NCBI GenBank assembly: GCA_965603825.1
Contig: CBFDEM010000014.1
Span: 743,157-807,156 of the forward strand
Origin: Blepharisma stoltei ATCC 30299
Lineage: Eukaryota; Protista; Ciliophora
Length of the DNA stretch: 64,000 nt
Direction: 5' to 3'
Positions 16,601 through 64,000 of the stretch are shown in pieces. Each line of letters opens with the position of its first letter. The stretch's first letter is position 1. The notes beneath the pieces are model-generated. The model was given only the letters and a program-made list of their open reading frames with translations, had not been told where the DNA came from and searched no databases. A program made the position numbers and the translations under genes.

Positions 16601-18620
16601 CTTCATTTATGACTTGCCGCTTCCAAAGTCTGAAAGATTTCCCTAGCTTGCCCATATATTGGTAAACCAGCATTTTCTTCACCCTTGGGAGAGACCCATA
16701 AAAAGTGCTTGCTACTTGTTTCCATTGATAAAAATAGCTAGAAACCTGCACATTGAATCTTTTCGCTAAAACTCGTCCTACTTTGATTTGGCTATTCCTC
16801 AAGCTTTCATTGTGTGTGTAGCTTAGCTTTTGTTCTAGTTCTAATCTTTTTGGTTTTTCAACAGCGAGTTCGTCACTTGCTGCTTTTAATTTTTGTGTAA
16901 GTTTATATGACTTCCAAGCATAAAATAATTTTTGCTTCGTCGTACGCATATGTGCGTTATCTAAAACTCCAAAATACTTATAAAGCCTATCAAGTGTCTT
17001 TTTCTGTTTAATTTCTTTTTTCCAGGTATGGAACCCTTTAGCTAGATCCTTATTGGTCCATCTCCTCATCATTCTTTTCATTACATATCTCTTCGAATTG
17101 TTATTTTGTGTATATCTCTGCATCTCATGAAGAATATTTACCTGATAAAGTTTGTCTGCCTGCTGTTGCTGGTATTCTTCAAGGTTCCTTGAATACTTTT
17201 TATTAAAGACCAAGTCTTTTAGCGCCCTAAAATAAGCTCCTTTCAGCATAACAGCAGCGAAATCAGTCGACAAATCTTCTTTGGCCTGCTCAAACCTCAT
17301 TTTATCAGTAAATCTTGTCCATTTTTCAAAGGCGTGCTTTATTTTTCCTTTAAAAATCCTAAAAGCCAGGGTGTTAAAGTTTAAATTTTTGTGGTTATTG
17401 TAAGTGAATAAATATTTCCATTGGAGGAATCTAGCCCTTACAGAGTGCTCGTTGCTTTTTCCGAATGCTTTGTAAATAAGGGATAAGGCAATTCCATGCC
17501 GCTGCTTGCAGCGCTGCTGATATAAGAAATTTGTACGCCAGTCTGCGAAGAATTTGGATAAAACTCCTCGGTTGCCAAGCTTTTCGACTAGGTTTAGCCT
17601 GATGGCTTGGACGTTTGTCCAGCCTAAGCTGCCTCTCCACTTGTCAAAAAGCCGCTTTGTCATTCTTGTATTGCACTTTTCAAAATTTGCGACGATTTTT
17701 CCGACACCGTATACTTGGTTTTGGCAGAATTTTAAGGTGTCGCTCATTTCACTCAAAGCTGAGTTCAGCCTTCTTGCGACAATTCTTTCGAGCTCTTTGC
17801 AGATATTTCTGCTTGCTAATAATCTACAATGTCTTTTATGAATCCATTTCATATTTTCAGTCTCATTATTTTTTGAAATTTGGTAATTTTCCATTCTTAC
17901 AGCTTCATCATGCATCCTAATATTTAGCTCTCCTTTCTCTCCTTCCAAAATTGAAATATTTTCCCTCATCTCTGCTCTCTCACGCATCAGCTTGGTACAC
18001 TCATCCTCAACTGTCGAGATCTTCCCCTGCATAATATTGATTTTTTCTGTCAGCATCCTATTATCTGCTTCCAAAATCGCTATATGGTCAATTTTCTGCT
18101 GCAGTTTCGCCATATACTCTTGCTTTTCATAGCCAAAGGACGAGGCAGCGATTTCAAAATCTTTCAATTTTGAACGTAATTCTGCCCGCTCAATTTCAAT
18201 TGTATGGAGAAGGTGGCGGAGACGGTTGTTTTCTTCTTTTTCGAACTTCAGGTCGCTTTGCATGTTGCGGTCCACGACGCTTTTGACTTTTCCTGAGTGT
18301 TTCATCTTGCGCTGGAGCTCTTCATTGTGCAGTTTTTCACTGTGAAGTTCGTTGATAAGGTCTTGCTTGTCTTGGTTAAGCTTGTCTACTTCTATGAGAA
18401 GGGCGTTTATACGCTTCATAAGTTGGGCGCGGTCGCCTGACTGAGTCACTGTTTGGGAGTTCTCGATGTCTTGAAGCTGGGTCGCCCGCTCTCGCTGATA
18501 TAGTTCATATTCTTTTTGGTTTAGTTGTTTTCTAAGAGAAACCGTGTCTTGGGCAAGAGACTGAGGAGTCCGATCTCTTATGGGTGGGTTGGAGTGGGAA
18601 CGGTTTGAAGACTCAAACAT
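13632..18620 (-). CDS. Sfi1-repeat centrin-binding fibrous protein, 1662 aa
   Basis: Track ORFs 14625-18620 and 13632-14540 are in frame across one TGA; recurrent FxxW[KR] motifs about 33 aa apart (FDKWR, FADWR, FLQWK, FEKWT, FHTWK, FYAWK, FRLWK, FDAWK, FDRWR, FDNWH, FGAWK) with coiled-coil spacers. Confidence 0.8.
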
Positions 18621-57600: not shown

Positions 57601-60132
57601 AATAAGAATGCAAATTCTGAATCTGAGCTCCAGAAAATTATAATCGAAGCTGATAGTTTGAAGAAAAAATTAGGTGCTGCCACTAATGAAAATGGAGAAT
57701 TAAAATCAGAAACCCAAAGGTTGGCTCTAAAAAGTAGCGATTTTGAGAAAAGGCTCTTAAATGAAGCTAGCAGAAGCTCAGGTTTGGAATTGGATATTGA
57801 AGAGCTCAAGAAACAAATAAATGGCTTAGAAAGTAAAGGGAAAAATTTAAGTGATGAAAATAATTATTTGAAAATTAGCGTGCAGTCACTTGAAGAACAA
57901 AAAAGTGTTTTTAGCGAGAAAAATTCAAAACTTCAATCAGAAATTTCAATGCTGCTTTTAGAACAGAAGAACTTAGAGGAAAAATTGTTAGATTCATCAA
58001 AAGAAAATGAATATTATGCGGCACAAATAGCACAGCTTGATAAGAAAATAACAGAATTGCAAGACAGTTTGGCATTATCGCAAGAGGATAATCAATTTTT
58101 TGATGGACGAGTAAAGAAATTAAAAGAAGAGATAAAGGGAAAGGACTCTCAGATTGATCAACTAAGTAATGGAAATAAAATACTTGAACAAAAAATTTCT
58201 GCTTCATCAAAAGAAAATGAATATTATGCAGCACAAATAGAGCAACTTGATAAGAAAATAAAAGAATTGCAAGACAGTTTGGTATTATCACAAGAGGAAA
58301 ATCAATTTTTTGAAGGACAAATAAAGAAATTAAAAGAAGAGATAAAGGGAAAGGACTCTCAGATCGATCAACTAAGTAATCGAAATAAAATGCTAGAGCA
58401 AGAAATTTCTGCTATTAAAAATCTACTTGAAAACGAAATTCAATCGCACAAAGCCTTAACCGAAGCAAATGAAATTAAGCTCCAAGAAGAGATTGACAAA
58501 GCTGAAAAGTACTTCGAGAAAGTCAAGGAGAGTGAGGTGCAGAGCTGCAAGGAAACATTTGAAAAAGAAAAGACCTCAATCATTGGGAAATTCGGCATTG
58601 TTATTGCTGCAATCAAAAACGTGAATGGAACTAAAAATTCAGTTTTTGGTCAGCTGAAAACAAATATGAATGCCATTAGAGACAACTTGCTGCTAGTCCA
58701 AGAGTTTGCCAATGATTTTCTCTCAAAAGAAATGAAAAGCCTAACTGACCAAATAGAATACATGAACTCAAAAAATAAAATGGACACTGACTGGTATGCA
58801 AATCAAAGCAAAATAAAGTTTGAATCCGCAGCCGAAGAAATCAGGGAAAATTTATTGAGGTTTAAAGAACAATGTGCTGAAGGTCTTAAAGAGTATCGCA
58901 ATATGGGGAAATATGAGCTTGAATCATTCGAAAAAAGGAAGAATGCTTTAGCTACACATGCAGAGTCACTTGATAGAATTAGTTTTGCTTTTAATGTGTT
59001 TGAGAATGAGCTGGATACTTCTCTGCACCAGTACGACGACAAACACTCAGAATCTTTTGACAAGGAATCTGAACAAATTCTTCATGGAAGATCTAAGCTG
59101 TTGATTCATAGAGACTTGAACGTTACTGCAGACTCCTCCACTTTCACCCCAAAGAAAAGAAAAATTTCAACGCTGAAAATAATCCAGTCACACACATTAA
59201 ATAAACTTTTAGAAGAGTTGATGGACAATCGGTACGAGCTGGATATGAGATACTTGAAAGCTGGCAAAAAATTAATGCCAATGAATAAATTTTTCGACGA
59301 TTTTTTGGAAAGAAAATATGGGATTCAAACACTGCAAGATAAAAATAAGCAGAAAATCACAGATTCCTTAATAAAGTACAAAGATGATGATGAATATTAT
59401 GCCTTCTATTTCAATTTATTAGTCGAGAGTCCTAGCGCTTTTAGTCATGAATTAGCTCTATTTTTAGTCAAAATGAGGCACTCTTACAACCAGCTTAAAA
59501 ACTGCCAGGTTCAGGATAAAAACCTTACTCCAAAAAGCACTCCAAAAACCACCCCAAAAGCAACTCCAAGGCAAACTCCAAGGGCCACTCCTACCTCTAC
59601 CCCAAAGGATACACCAAATTCTACTCCAAAAGCAACTCCAAGAGGTACTCCTCATGGCTCTCCAAAGCCGTCAGGCATTAGGGATGAAATTTTCATATGC
59701 ATGAATCATGTCTTGACTTGGATTAGCAACTATTTCGCAAGCGAGCAGAAGTTTGGAGAATCCCTCATTAAATTCTTGAGACCAGAAGAGATTGAACAAA
59801 TTGACTGGAACATTTTCAATATCCAGCACACCATATGGAGAAAAGGCCTCGAACCTATAAAAGCCTACGAAATGATTTCGAACGAAGAAAGCAAGAAATT
59901 AACCCAAGAAGAGTTTGTGGTAGGGATGAAAGAAAAAATCAACTGCTTTATTTCTGAAGAAGATTTAGCAAGTATTTACCTTAGATTCGCGAACCCAGAA
60001 ATAGATGCTGAAAATTTCACGAGCTTTTTGAATATGAAAAGCTACTTTACAAATCCAAAACTGTATTGCTCTCAGATTCAATTCTTGAATGCACTTGTAA
60101 ACGCTTACAATACAACTCACATCACTGAGTAA
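54688..60132 (+). CDS. 1814-aa coiled-coil protein with TP-rich tract and C-terminal EF-hand-like region
   Basis: 54688-55359 and 55468-60132 in frame across a single TGA with no other stop. Confidence 0.85.
57994..58413 (+). repeat. Intragenic tandem duplication, 210-nt/70-aa unit
   Basis: SSKENEYYAAQI..EEIKGKDSQIDQLSN at 57994 and 58204. Confidence 0.9.
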
Positions 60133-60218
60133 GGAGATTATTATAGAGGTCAGAAGAATACTAAATAGCTCAATTTTTAAGTTTTAAGTAAGATCATATA
60201 TGAAGGAAACTGTTTAGC

Positions 60219-60740
60219 TTAGTTTCTGTTAAAAGCAATTGTTCCTTCACCCCATTCTGATTGTTCTCGAGTCCACTCATGCCATTCTTCCATATACTCA
60301 TCGTGATATTTTTCCCATAAGCCACTGGTAGGGTACAAACTGAGTTCGCCCCAATTCACAGAAGCCCTGAACTTAAGGACTCGTCCAATTTGCTTCTTAA
60401 GCTCTTCAACGTCGCTTCCAATTACCCTTTGAAGCTCCATTCCATCAGACAAGAAGAGGAAAGTTGGCTCGTGACGTACACAGTAATATTTTTTGGTTCT
60501 TTCCCCAACTCCTGTTGATGTATCGCAAATATAGGTTGAAAATGGTGGAATTTCAGTGAGATTAAGGAATTGGGATTGCAAATCTTTTGAGCACTCTGGA
60601 TTCCAGTTGTTTTTAAAGTAGAACAGTGCTAAAGAAGGCTGCTCTTTGTTGATGGTGTCATAGTGCTCATAGAAATTGTCAATTATTCGAACTTTGGAGC
60701 CAGGAATTGAAGTATAAGCTCTGAATAATCTTTGAAGCAT
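60219..60740 (-). CDS. Mitochondrial thioredoxin-fold protein lacking CxxC
   Basis: MLQRLFRAY presequence; FYF..WNPEC, V..EPTFLF..G.EL.RVIG. Confidence 0.7.
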   Translation of the reverse strand: MLQRLFRAYTSIPGSKVRIIDNFYEHYDTINKEQPSLALFYFKNNWNPECSKDLQSQFLNLTEIPPFSTYICDTSTGVGERTKKYYCVRHEPTFLFLSDGMELQRVIGSDVEELKKQIGRVLKFRASVNWGELSLYPTSGLWEKYHDEYMEEWHEWTREQSEWGEGTIAFNRN

Positions 60741-61039
60741 TTATATTTATTATAAGACAAATATTAATTCATCTTAAAAATAGCAACTCTAATCAAATAT
60801 GAGAATTATAATGTATATAAAGTCTGAATTTCAATAAATGCTCAGAGTCTTTTAATTTTTTGGCTTTTTGAGTCATTTTTATTGATTTACTCCGCTTATG
60901 GTTCGATCTTAGCCATACTCATTATTCAGGCAAATATCTTAACCTTGATTTTATATCAACTCATGTAATTCAGTGGGCATATAGCATTATGTCTTTTGAG
61001 ATTGCAGGATATAAATTTTAATTAAGGCTATTTTTAAAA

Positions 61040-61411
61040 ATGGGATCATTTTTCTCAAAACTCTGGCAGCTTCTGTTTAGTGATGAAGAGAGACGAATTC
61101 TAATGCTTGGACTCGATGCATCTGGAAAAACAACCATTCTTTACAAACTTAAGCTTGATGAAGTAGTATCCACAATTCCAACAATTGGCTTTAATGTTGA
61201 AGAAGTCAAATATCGAAGTATTCATTTTCAAATCTGAGATATTGGTGGCCAATTGAAACTAAGAGATTTATGGCATTACTACTATAAAGATACAGAGGCT
61301 ATTATTTTCGTCATTGATTCAATTGATCGAGAAAGAATTGAAGAAGCTAATGAAGCGCTTCATAAAATGCTTGCTAATGAGTTGATTATTCCCCCCTCCG
61401 TTAACAACTAA
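61040..61411 (+). CDS. ARF: ADP-ribosylation factor family GTPase, interrupted after about codon 116
   Basis: MG N-terminus, [26 protein letters not shown] (W=TGA), LWHYYY, IFVIDS.DRERI; homology stops at ANELI, before NKQD. Confidence 0.85.
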
Positions 61412-62944
61412 ATTTTTCTCTGTTATGATTTTTTTTTTTTATATCTCGATTTGGGAATGTTTGAAATAAAACTGCAATTTAATTTTAAAAAATTTTGCTT
61501 TGGAGTGAAAATCATCTAAAACTATTAGAGCTGTAGTTACTTTTGGATGGGTGGGCTCTCCCCTGCTACGCCTTTATCACTATATGAGGAGAAAGCCTTT
61601 ATGAAATAAATTTAGCTTTATCTTGATAATTATTGTCGGCAATAATTACTACCACATGACATTCAGATCTGTTTCTTTGCTCTCACAATTCACCGACGCT
61701 TACATATGTTAGATCTGTCAAGAGAGAGGATATTTAGATACGAGAGTTTTTGCTATCCTACTTTTTTTCATCAACACTTCGTGACGACCTCTTGACTCTA
61801 CCAAAATGTCGACATCACAATGATATAATTCGACTGGGATTCAATTATAACAATTAGTATATAGCTCGAGCACTCTTTAGCTATATATGAAATATTTTAG
61901 ACAAATAATTTCATATTAAATTTTTTTATTGCTTAGATTAATTTTACTAGAAAAACAATAAAATTAGTATTTATTGAGTGCTTTATAATTAAACTTTTCC
62001 TATTTATTAACAAAAATAATGCAAATCATTAGGGTGTTAATTAATCTAATCTACTGTAAATGTTTATTTAATAAGTCTATTTTCATAAAAGAATGATGCG
62101 ATATATATGCTGAGAGCAATTCGTCATTTAATAATTGAGTCATGCATGTATTATTATTTACTGGTTCTATAGTAATTGAGCCTTAATTCTCCCTTCAAGA
62201 TTTCTGTGCTAGAAAAAAGTAATCAGCCTGGTTGTTATTTTTAATGTCAATGAGATAAAGGGCTGTATTATATGCTCAGCATTCTTTATTCTTGATAGGC
62301 TTGCTTAAGTTTGAGTTCTAAGTTGAGCCTGAATTTTTATATAACAAGCATATTCTCTTGGATTCACAACATCATTTTTCAGGTTATTGAATATACTTAA
62401 GATCTCTATTGTTTGGCATTCAGACCTTAATAATTTAATATTAAATAGAAGGCTTTCCCGTTTTATACACTTCGCAAGTCCCAGCTATTTATTAAATACA
62501 AACTCACTAGGTGGAAAGCTTTGAGTCTTTATTATTTTAAATTTACAAAATAGATTAAATAGCGTGAAGAAAATACTTTATTCTATGCCATCATTCAATG
62601 ATATAAGTAAAAGAAAAATGCATGTGACTTAAGTTATGATTTAAATTTCATTCAATTATCAGTCTTTAGCTATTTTAGTAGAATAATTTATAATTTTCGA
62701 GCTATATGATAAGAAATGCAATTATAAACTTCTTAAAAACCTAAGGTAATTTCATTATCTAAAAATTTATGAAGTAAAATTCAAGATTACATAAAGGGTC
62801 TTATTTAATTAATAATCACTCAAAATTTATATTCCATGAAATAAATAACATATTTTTAGAATATATAACTAATAATATTTTTAAATTACTCTAAATTTTG
62901 AAACTTGCTTCAAAGTATTTACTTTTATAAATTAAAAGAATCAA
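61386..62944. mobile_element. Putative left end of an IES/MITE-like element (TTA + TTCCCCCCTCCGTTAACAACTAAA), truncated by the telomere
   Basis: Begins where Arf homology ends; TA-containing boundary; poly-C TIR-like end; non-coding AT-rich body; no partner inverted repeat found. Confidence 0.45.
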
Positions 62945-64000
62945 AGGGTGTTAGGGTGTTAGGGTGTTAGGGTGTTAGGGTGTTAGGGTGTTAGGGTGTT
63001 AGGGTGTTAGGGTGTTAGGGTGTTAGGGTGTTAGGGTGTTAGGGTGTTAGGGTGTTAGGGTGTTAGGGTGTTAGGGTGTTAGGGTGTTAGGGTGTTAGGG
63101 TGTTAGGGTGTTAGGGTGTTAGGGTGTTAGGGTGTTAGGGTGTTAGGGTGTTAGGGTGTTAGGGTGTTAGGGTGTTAGGGTGTTAGGGTGTTAGGGTGTT
63201 AGGGTGTTAGGGTGTTAGGGTGTTAGGGTGTTAGGGGTGTTAGGGTGTTAGGGGTTAGGGTGTTAGGGTGTTAGGGTGTTAGGGTTGTTAGGGTGTTAGG
63301 GTGTTAGGGTGTTAGGGTGTTAGGGTGTTAGGGTGTTAGGGGTGTTAGGGTGTTAGGGTGTTAGGGTGTTAGGGTGTTAGGGTGTTAGGGTGTTAGGGTG
63401 TTAGGGTGTTAGGGTGTTAGGGTGTTAGGGTGTTAGGTGTTAGGGTGTTAGGGTGTTAGGGTGTTAGGGTGTTAGGGTGTTAGGGTGTTAGGGTGTTAGG
63501 GTGTTAGGGTGTTAGGGTGTTAGGGTGTTAGGGTGTTAGGGTGTTAGGGTGTTAGGGTGTTAGGGTGTTAGGGTGTTAGGGTGTTAGGGTGTTAGGGTGT
63601 TAGGGTGTTAGGGTGTTAGGGTGTTAGGGTGTTAGGGTGTTAGGGTGTTAGGGTGTTAGGGTGTTAGGGTGTTAGGGTGTTAGGGTGTTAGGGTGTTAGG
63701 GTGTTAGGGTGTTAGGGTGTTAGGGTGTTAGGGTGTTAGGGTGTTAGGGTGTTAGGGTGTTAGGGTGTTAGGGTGGTGTTAGGGTGTTAGGGTGTTAGGG
63801 TGTTAGGGTGTTAGGGTGTTAGGGTGTTAGGGTGTTAGGGTGTTAGGGTGTTAGGGTGTTAGGGTGTTAGGGTGTTAGGGTGTTAGGGTGTTAGGGTGTT
63901 AGGGTGTTAGGTGTTAGGGTGGGTGTTAGGGTGTTAGGGTGTTAGGGTGTTAGGGTGTTAGGGTGTTAGGGGTGTTAGGGTGTTAGGGTGTTAGGGTGTT
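62945..64000 (+). repeat. Telomere (TTAGGGTG)n = (CCCTAACA)n
   Basis: More than 1 kb of near-perfect 8-nt repeat to the window end, G-rich strand 3'; occasional variant units. Confidence 0.99.

Follow-up and report, generated by a model that had tools for sequence, protein, structure and literature searches.

Results

The Arf locus at the end of contig 14

The stretch of DNA analyzed here (the window, 64,000 nucleotides) corresponds to contig 14:743157-807156 of the somatic assembly of Blepharisma stoltei ATCC 30299, and it ends where that contig ends. Near its telomeric end lies a gene of the Arf GTPase family which is broken by a 542-bp insert, and the left end of this insert resembles the terminal repeat of the Blepharisma transposon Bogo (Table 1). 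The published macronuclear (MAC) genome of this strain comprises 41 Mb in 64 telomere-to-telomere contigs and is virtually homozygous, with CCCTAACA as telomere repeat and UGA read as tryptophan (PMC9942806). The somatic assembly that was searched in this work has 41.46 Mb in 64 contigs.

Table 1. Features of the interrupted Arf locus (window coordinates)
Feature	Positions	Strand	Description
Arf gene, 5' part	61040..61388	+	codons 1-116 and first base of codon 117
TTA target site	61386..61388	+	left copy of a presumed target-site duplication; TTA also in the intact allele
Bogo-like terminal repeat	61389..61414	+	TT, six C, TCCGT, then TAACAACTAAA
Insert	61389..61930	+	542 bp, in place of ~166 bp of Arf coding sequence; absent from the relative
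Surviving Arf tail	61931..61961	+	third base of Trp172, nine codons (LRLILLEKQ), TAA stop; 31 nt
Ancestral non-coding subtelomeric spacer	61962..62945	.	in records 27-30 of run X8; without long open reading frame; not part of the insert
Telomere	62946..64000	+	~130 units of GGGTGTTA, few variant units, up to the contig end

The Arf reading frame starts with the ATG at 61040 and runs up to ..ANEL-I at 61387, and from there it reads IPPSVNN and a stop; the locus now codes for 116 Arf residues plus these seven. A TGA at 61235 falls in switch II and must be translated as tryptophan, since the Arf switch II reads W-D-I-G-G-Q across it. Two stop-free pieces of the gene matched the Pfam Arf profile PF00025 with E values of 8e-21 and 2e-17, covering positions 3-62 and 64-111 of its 174. 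As other Arf/Arl GTPases, the window copy has the N-terminal Gly2, an intact P-loop (GLDASGKT) and an intact switch II (WDIGGQ), with G1-G3 present; unlike them, it lacks the C-terminal third and, in all frames, the G4 motif NKxD and G5, and therefore it cannot be a working GTPase. The search for NKxD in all frames downstream of 61388 gave no result, and neither did that for the Arf 3' half in six frames. An earlier note on this DNA had described an Arf frame that stops without decay in the middle of the G domain, and also the TTA, the poly-C 24-mer behind it and the telomere, and all of them lie where that note had placed them. The Arf-like family has more than 30 members in this genome, and an exact look-up of the 65-residue N-terminal piece returned no record. 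Over the Arf start (61024-61108) there is a sub-threshold Rfam match to the C/D snoRNA Z161/Z228 (28 bits against a gathering score of 45, E 0.015), which we take as chance; it was the only Rfam match in 60700-63000, a region where no tRNA was found.

A full-length Arf paralogue is present on the minus strand of contig 30 (117599-118120), with an open frame of 181 codons. Between 61029 and 61388 it is 87% identical to the window. The likeness breaks off precisely at 61388, after ..GAGTTGATTA, where the paralogue goes on with KGIPLLVFANKQD and later carries FANKQD, the G4 motif missing from the window copy. The break is thus a point of sharp rearrangement and no gradual decay. The paralogue itself has GRT in place of GKT in the P-loop and a switch II that reads WDIDGQ. 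Compared with the window copy it shows a dN/dS of 0.79 at a dS of 0.18, and the likeness between both is limited to the coding region and about 11 nt in front of it. The paralogue may be decaying, or may not be a GTPase.

An intact orthologue in a relative

The evidence from read runs consists of assembled contigs, and loose ends and joints were judged among those listed, with 3 loose ends and 25 records outside the list. X5 and X7 are other libraries of the same strain as the window, and their contigs are identical to it; they are absent over 62284-62960, a gap from which we draw no conclusion. X8 carries the same species label and is about 2-8% diverged. Its species label, its study and the variants that it has in common with X11 suggest that it is strain HT-IV. 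X11, which by guess is an RNA run, is of mixed strains: both haplotypes of the neighbouring gene are found in it (records 2 and 3), as is to be expected from the ATCC 30299 x HT-IV mating time course that has been published (PMC9942806). This neighbour (60219-60740, minus strand, 173 codons) has by far the highest depth in X11, and it was used as internal control for the representation of alleles there.

Record 25 of X8 covers 60859-61388, that is, the unique spacer upstream of the gene together with the Arf 5' half, and then goes on for 175 more bases, beginning with ..GGAATTCCTTTACTAGTATTTGCAAACA, which code for IPLLVFANK. The depth of X8 is 0 over 61472-61819. Record 27 covers 61931-62106 and is preceded there by AAGGATTAGATTG (..EGLDW), identical to the sequence found in the contig-30 paralogue just before the C-terminal WLR, while records 28-30 cover 62119-62921. 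Over 61931-62921, the identity of records 27-30 to the window is approximately 92-95%. Taken together, these records indicate that in the relative an intact Arf gene is directly followed by the DNA found in the window at 61931-62921, and that the foreign piece in the window is therefore only the 542 bp of the insert.

The same records settle the nature of the short tail behind the insert. A 34-nt colinear match joins it to the C-terminus of the contig-30 paralogue; by itself this match is marginal by shuffling (27/500), and it was accepted because record 27 of X8 joins ..EGLDW to 61931. With 2+162+2 nt lost, approximately 166 bp, the gene would give a protein of 181 codons, like the paralogue. 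The earlier note had regarded the 1.55 kb beyond the break as non-coding DNA, which is true for most of it, the last 31 nt of the Arf gene being the exception. The 166 nt themselves, taken from the paralogue and aligned with the insert as DNA and as protein with shuffled controls, gave nothing above chance. The segment 61759-61930 was considered as a decayed Arf remnant and dropped, its alignments to these 166 nt being no better than those of shuffled sequences.

The earlier note had also proposed to search for the flank of 61388 joined to an Arf 3' half, and this joint was found in both X8 and X11, where it belongs to the intact allele. In X11 it is carried by record 5, a contig of 534 nt from the intact orthologue which matches 61046-61388 with 5 differences (98.5% identity) and then adds 191 bases, which begin with GTGGAATTCC.. 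and lead into the intact 3' half. At the insertion point the intact gene reads ..GATTA and then GTGGAATTCC... The intact allele is thus expressed, X11 being taken as RNA by guess. Of the three differences listed between the window and the expressed orthologue, two are synonymous and one is Ile/Leu; the lack of decay in the 5' half reflects a recent loss or a low divergence between the strains. No Arf contig of the window type was seen in X11, where the neighbouring gene shows both haplotypes. In addition, the sequence of the X8 relative is longer by 24 bases immediately before the Arf start codon (at window 61024), which means that the promoter or leader differs between the strains as well.

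The insert and its Bogo-like end

The Bogo terminal repeat has been described as CT-polyC-TCCGTGAGCGAACAAAA, about 30 bp long, with a TAA/TTA target duplication, and BogoMITE as an element of about 388 bp (PMC9942856); the BogoMITE consensus sequence was sought in the supplement of that paper and is not given there. In the window, the 24-mer at 61389-61412 stands directly after the TTA. Behind the poly-C, the alignment with the Bogo consensus agrees at 13 of 16 positions and contains one gap; the inner half differs. The proposal of a Bogo-related end at a TTA is therefore supported by the published repeat and its target, as a relationship and not as identity. The 11-mer CCCCCCTCCGT occurs at 4 sites on both strands of the 41.5 Mb MAC genome, and the reversed control at 0. 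The other three sites were judged to be chance and not Bogo ends: the one on contig 45, on checking, falls within an open frame with ..PPDPPPSV.., and those on contigs 4 and 55 look coding by eye. That a poly-C-TCCGT motif should lie by chance 2 nt from the exact break and right after a TTA seems very unlikely, and there is a fair case, from the repeat sequence, for regarding the left end of the insert as Bogo-related, though not as Bogo itself, given its different inner repeat.

The right side of the insert looks different. The junction reads ..TTTATT|GCTTAG.., with no TA or TTA at the joint, and the side that would carry the right copy of the TTA/TAA is deleted; the left TTA is present. A second terminal repeat, either of the insert's own end or of the Bogo consensus, was sought over 61423-62945, and nothing was found above shuffled controls. 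Eight stop-free pieces of the insert contained neither a transposase nor any other Pfam domain, and the insert has no Rfam match; DDE_1 matches in the somatic genome are confined to contigs 36, 57 and 6. The interior of the insert shows no similarity to other Bogo-like relics in the somatic genome, where no further copies of the 24-mer, of the 1557 bp behind the break or of the 542 bp were found either. The insert is thus single-copy there, an outcome which the earlier note had named as counting against its reading; this search covered the somatic genome, and germline-limited copies lie outside it.

The insert is retained at full depth: in both X5 and X7 its depth equals that of the flanks, and one contig spans flanks and insert. 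A joined form, as excision would leave it, was sought in the X5 and X7 contigs and none is reported. Record 11 of X5 (60214-61950) and record 20 of X7 (60909-61881) run across the junction with 0 differences each, from which it follows that the junction is not a chimera, an error that the earlier note had named as a refutation. An internal eliminated sequence is absent from somatic DNA and is cut out between short direct repeats; the insert, in these data, is present in somatic DNA and uncut. The idea that the insert is currently removed or variably retained has to be given up for the data at hand. A loose end at 61938 in X5 was examined as a candidate germline junction and rejected, as it comes from a spurious 22-nt similarity to contig 2:3807.

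The DNA between the Arf gene and the telomere

Since the distal 1 kb is subtelomeric DNA of ancestral origin, the element does not contain the telomere. The earlier note had placed it inside, and this claim fails on the fact that 61931-62921 follows the intact Arf 3' end in the insert-free relative. The distal 470 bp are single-copy, with no second copy found in the somatic genome. The telomere unit GGGTGTTA is a permutation of CCCTAACA; the window contains 127 exact units, all of them within 62946-64000 except one at 17369.

Some further observations concern this end of the chromosome. At 62029-62039, 0.9 kb inside the chromosome end, there is an internal 11-mer, TTAGGGTGTTA, equal to 1.4 telomere units, and in the relative single nucleotides are deleted at 62031 and 62039; the 11-mer may have arisen by chance, or it may be left over from an earlier site of telomere addition. 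Over 62008-62256, contigs of X5 (DNA, with a depth of about one third of that of the flanks) and of X11 enter at the TA of 62008-62009, coming from ..GCTAATGGTTGAGGAG, a sequence that the MAC assembly does not contain. A germline-limited sequence, or else a repeat, may have its right junction here. Finally, a contig with subtelomeric sequence of contig 2 (near 3.8-4.1 kb) partly aligns to window 59795-59951, which is the 3' end of a coiled-coil gene of 1554 codons. Such an alignment suggests that contig 2 carries a short paralogous segment close to its left end.

Discussion

Relationship to known elements

The closest counterparts of the insert are Bogo and BogoMITE, of the pogo/Tigger family (Seah et al. 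2023, PMC9942856), with which it has in common the insertion at TTA, a short lead-in, the poly-C, TCCGT and an A-rich ..AAC.AAA stretch; like many BogoMITE eliminated sequences, it lies within coding sequence. Its poly-C, however, has 6 residues compared with about 11, and its inner repeat reads TAAC-AACTAAA where that of Bogo is GAGCGAACAAAA. Furthermore, it measures 542 bp and has one end only, whereas BogoMITE is complete at about 388 bp, and it lacks any transposase domain, while the autonomous Bogo codes for a transposase with HTH_Tnp_Tc5 and DDE_1. Intact Bogo copies have all been reported inside eliminated sequences (PMC9942856), in contrast to the insert, which is somatic at full depth. 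Judged by its sequence, then, the insert is a one-ended Bogo-related fragment and not a member of Bogo/BogoMITE; we do not call it a member because it lacks the second repeat, the length and the transposase of those elements. BstTc1, a Tc1-family transposon of the same germline, also has a terminal repeat with poly-C, followed by TCG and T-rich sequence, but it has a TATA duplication and a GTA lead-in, and the TTA and TCCGT of the window fit Bogo better (PMC9942856).

Two processes known from other systems offer parallels as well. When cut-and-paste elements undergo one-ended or aberrant transposition, the outcome is an insertion with an adjacent deletion, and here, too, one intact element end stands at the target while the other end and flanking host DNA are gone; the difference is that in our case the mechanism is presumed, and two separate events would yield the same result. 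In Paramecium boundary mutants, eliminated sequences turn somatic once a boundary is lost. As in those mutants, a germline-type insert is kept in the soma and the host gene is inactivated; unlike in them, the deletion takes in the complete right boundary along with 166 bp of the host gene, and the former excision of the insert is presumed.

Near matches to the Bogo inner repeat (up to 3 mismatches) were also counted in the MAC genome, giving 12 against 5 in the control. Bogo-like sites among them are contig 30:632813, contig 5:890112, contig 18:379596, contig 35:414125 and 415823, and contig 60:174992. The contig-30 site reads TAA-TCTCACCC-TCCGTGAGCGAGTAAAA and lies 1.57 kb before the telomere, and the contig-5 site 2.7 kb before a telomere. 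Both are solo ends that face the telomere as in the window, with ordinary genes (TPR, kinase) in between, and Bogo relics may therefore accumulate in subtelomeric DNA.

Origin of the interrupted gene

How the present structure arose can be explained in several ways. The reading that we consider probable is that a one-ended Bogo-related fragment, which can no longer be excised, became fixed in DNA of the ATCC 30299 type and killed a dispensable Arf paralogue. The ancestral locus would have been a complete, expressed Arf-family gene of 181 codons, with a spacer of about 1 kb and the telomere behind it. The TTA in codons 116-117 would then, in this strain's lineage, have received a cut-and-paste element related to Bogo. 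The right part of the element would afterwards have been lost along with the adjoining ~166 bp of Arf, which code for NKxD, G5 and most of the C-terminal half; this loss may belong to the aberrant insertion itself or to a deletion that came later. Lacking one of its boundaries, the 542-bp remainder would no longer be removed during MAC development, leaving it at full copy number and the gene dead. This history supposes that all 542 bp derive from the element, that insertion preceded deletion, and that the germline (micronuclear, MIC) copy has the same structure.

Some considerations weigh against this reading. Only about 24-26 nt of the insert are tied to Bogo, and the remainder could be filler DNA. 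The germline form of the locus may also differ from the somatic form. Besides, the DNA of the relative is mostly somatic, so a complete element at the same TTA may be normally excised there, and for this reason the data do not date the insertion, at the level of the germline, as specific to this strain. Finally, X11 is a single run of mixed strains, and the lack of a window-type transcript was read from its contigs.

The same final structure would result if the germline Arf held a complete Bogo-related element and a wrong pair of boundaries, one inside the element and the other 166 bp into Arf, rather than the two TTAs, had been cut at MAC formation and the product kept in a clonal soma. The strain has been in vegetative culture for more than 50 years (PMC9942806) and low-frequency errors in which somatic sequence is cut out are reported for Blepharisma (PMC9942856); moreover, some loose ends fall outside those listed. 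Still, we regard such a somatic mis-excision as unlikely. Among the loose ends listed, none is found at 61930/61931 in X5 or X7, even though at least one junction in these runs (that at 62008) is missing from the somatic assembly, and they so probably contain some germline DNA; nor does the right junction show a TA or TTA, in contrast to the published excision sites (PMC9942856). An origin with no transposon at all, in which 542 bp of filler DNA were captured to repair a deletion in Arf and the poly-C-TCCGT next to the TTA is a coincidence, would account for an insert with only one end like a terminal repeat, with an inner repeat that differs from Bogo at 3 positions and by a gap, and with an interior unlike other Bogo-like relics in the somatic genome. 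It becomes rather improbable in view of the 11-mer, which occurs about once per 10 Mb and yet stands 2 nt from the exact break after TTA, a chance of the order of 1e-7.

The reading of the earlier note, according to which all 1.55 kb from 61389 are an unexcised germline-limited element that was broken and capped de novo by a telomere, had in its favour the Bogo-like end at TTA, the non-coding AT-rich DNA up to the telomere, and the frequency of alternative telomere addition in this genome (PMC9942806). We now consider it highly improbable, since the Arf tail with its stop codon survives at 61931-61961 and the insert-free relative has 61931-62921 directly after its intact Arf; the objection that the X8 contigs come from a different locus is countered by their 13-nt Arf lead-in and by the unique upstream spacer. 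Its corollary, that precise excision would restore a full Arf, does not hold either, because the 166 missing bases are nowhere in the locus, the insert included, and no joined form was seen. As for an assembly artefact, a chimeric join of the Arf fragment to an unrelated telomeric read, the position at a contig end and the long (~1 kb) telomere tract could raise the suspicion, but contigs from two other runs (the X5 and X7 records cited above) bridge 61388 and 61930 with zero differences and the distal part is syntenic in the relative, which leaves this explanation with practically no probability.

Implications for Blepharisma

Taken for itself, this is an otherwise ordinary Arf paralogue probably disrupted by a transposon, a pseudogene specific to the strain beside an ordinary chromosome end, and it says nothing new on telomere formation. 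A wider interpretation can be offered only tentatively, and we hold it possible rather than probable: a germline transposon or eliminated sequence that had lost a boundary would have escaped somatic editing, become fixed in the MAC and killed its host gene, while the sister strain keeps the gene and there the element is possibly still excised with precision; the fragment would represent a Bogo-related family with a different inner repeat, and together with the solo Bogo-like ends near two other contig ends (contigs 30 and 5) it may point to subtelomeric relic zones.

Blepharisma is the published example of transposons of the type of miniature inverted-repeat transposable elements (MITEs) that are tolerated through precise somatic excision. 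The locus described here would show the cost when this excision fails, as a one-ended fragment stays in the soma and the gene is lost. It could also show how recently Bogo-type elements moved. Since the sister strain has an intact, expressed allele, the pair of strains provides a simple test of whether excision needs both boundaries of the element.

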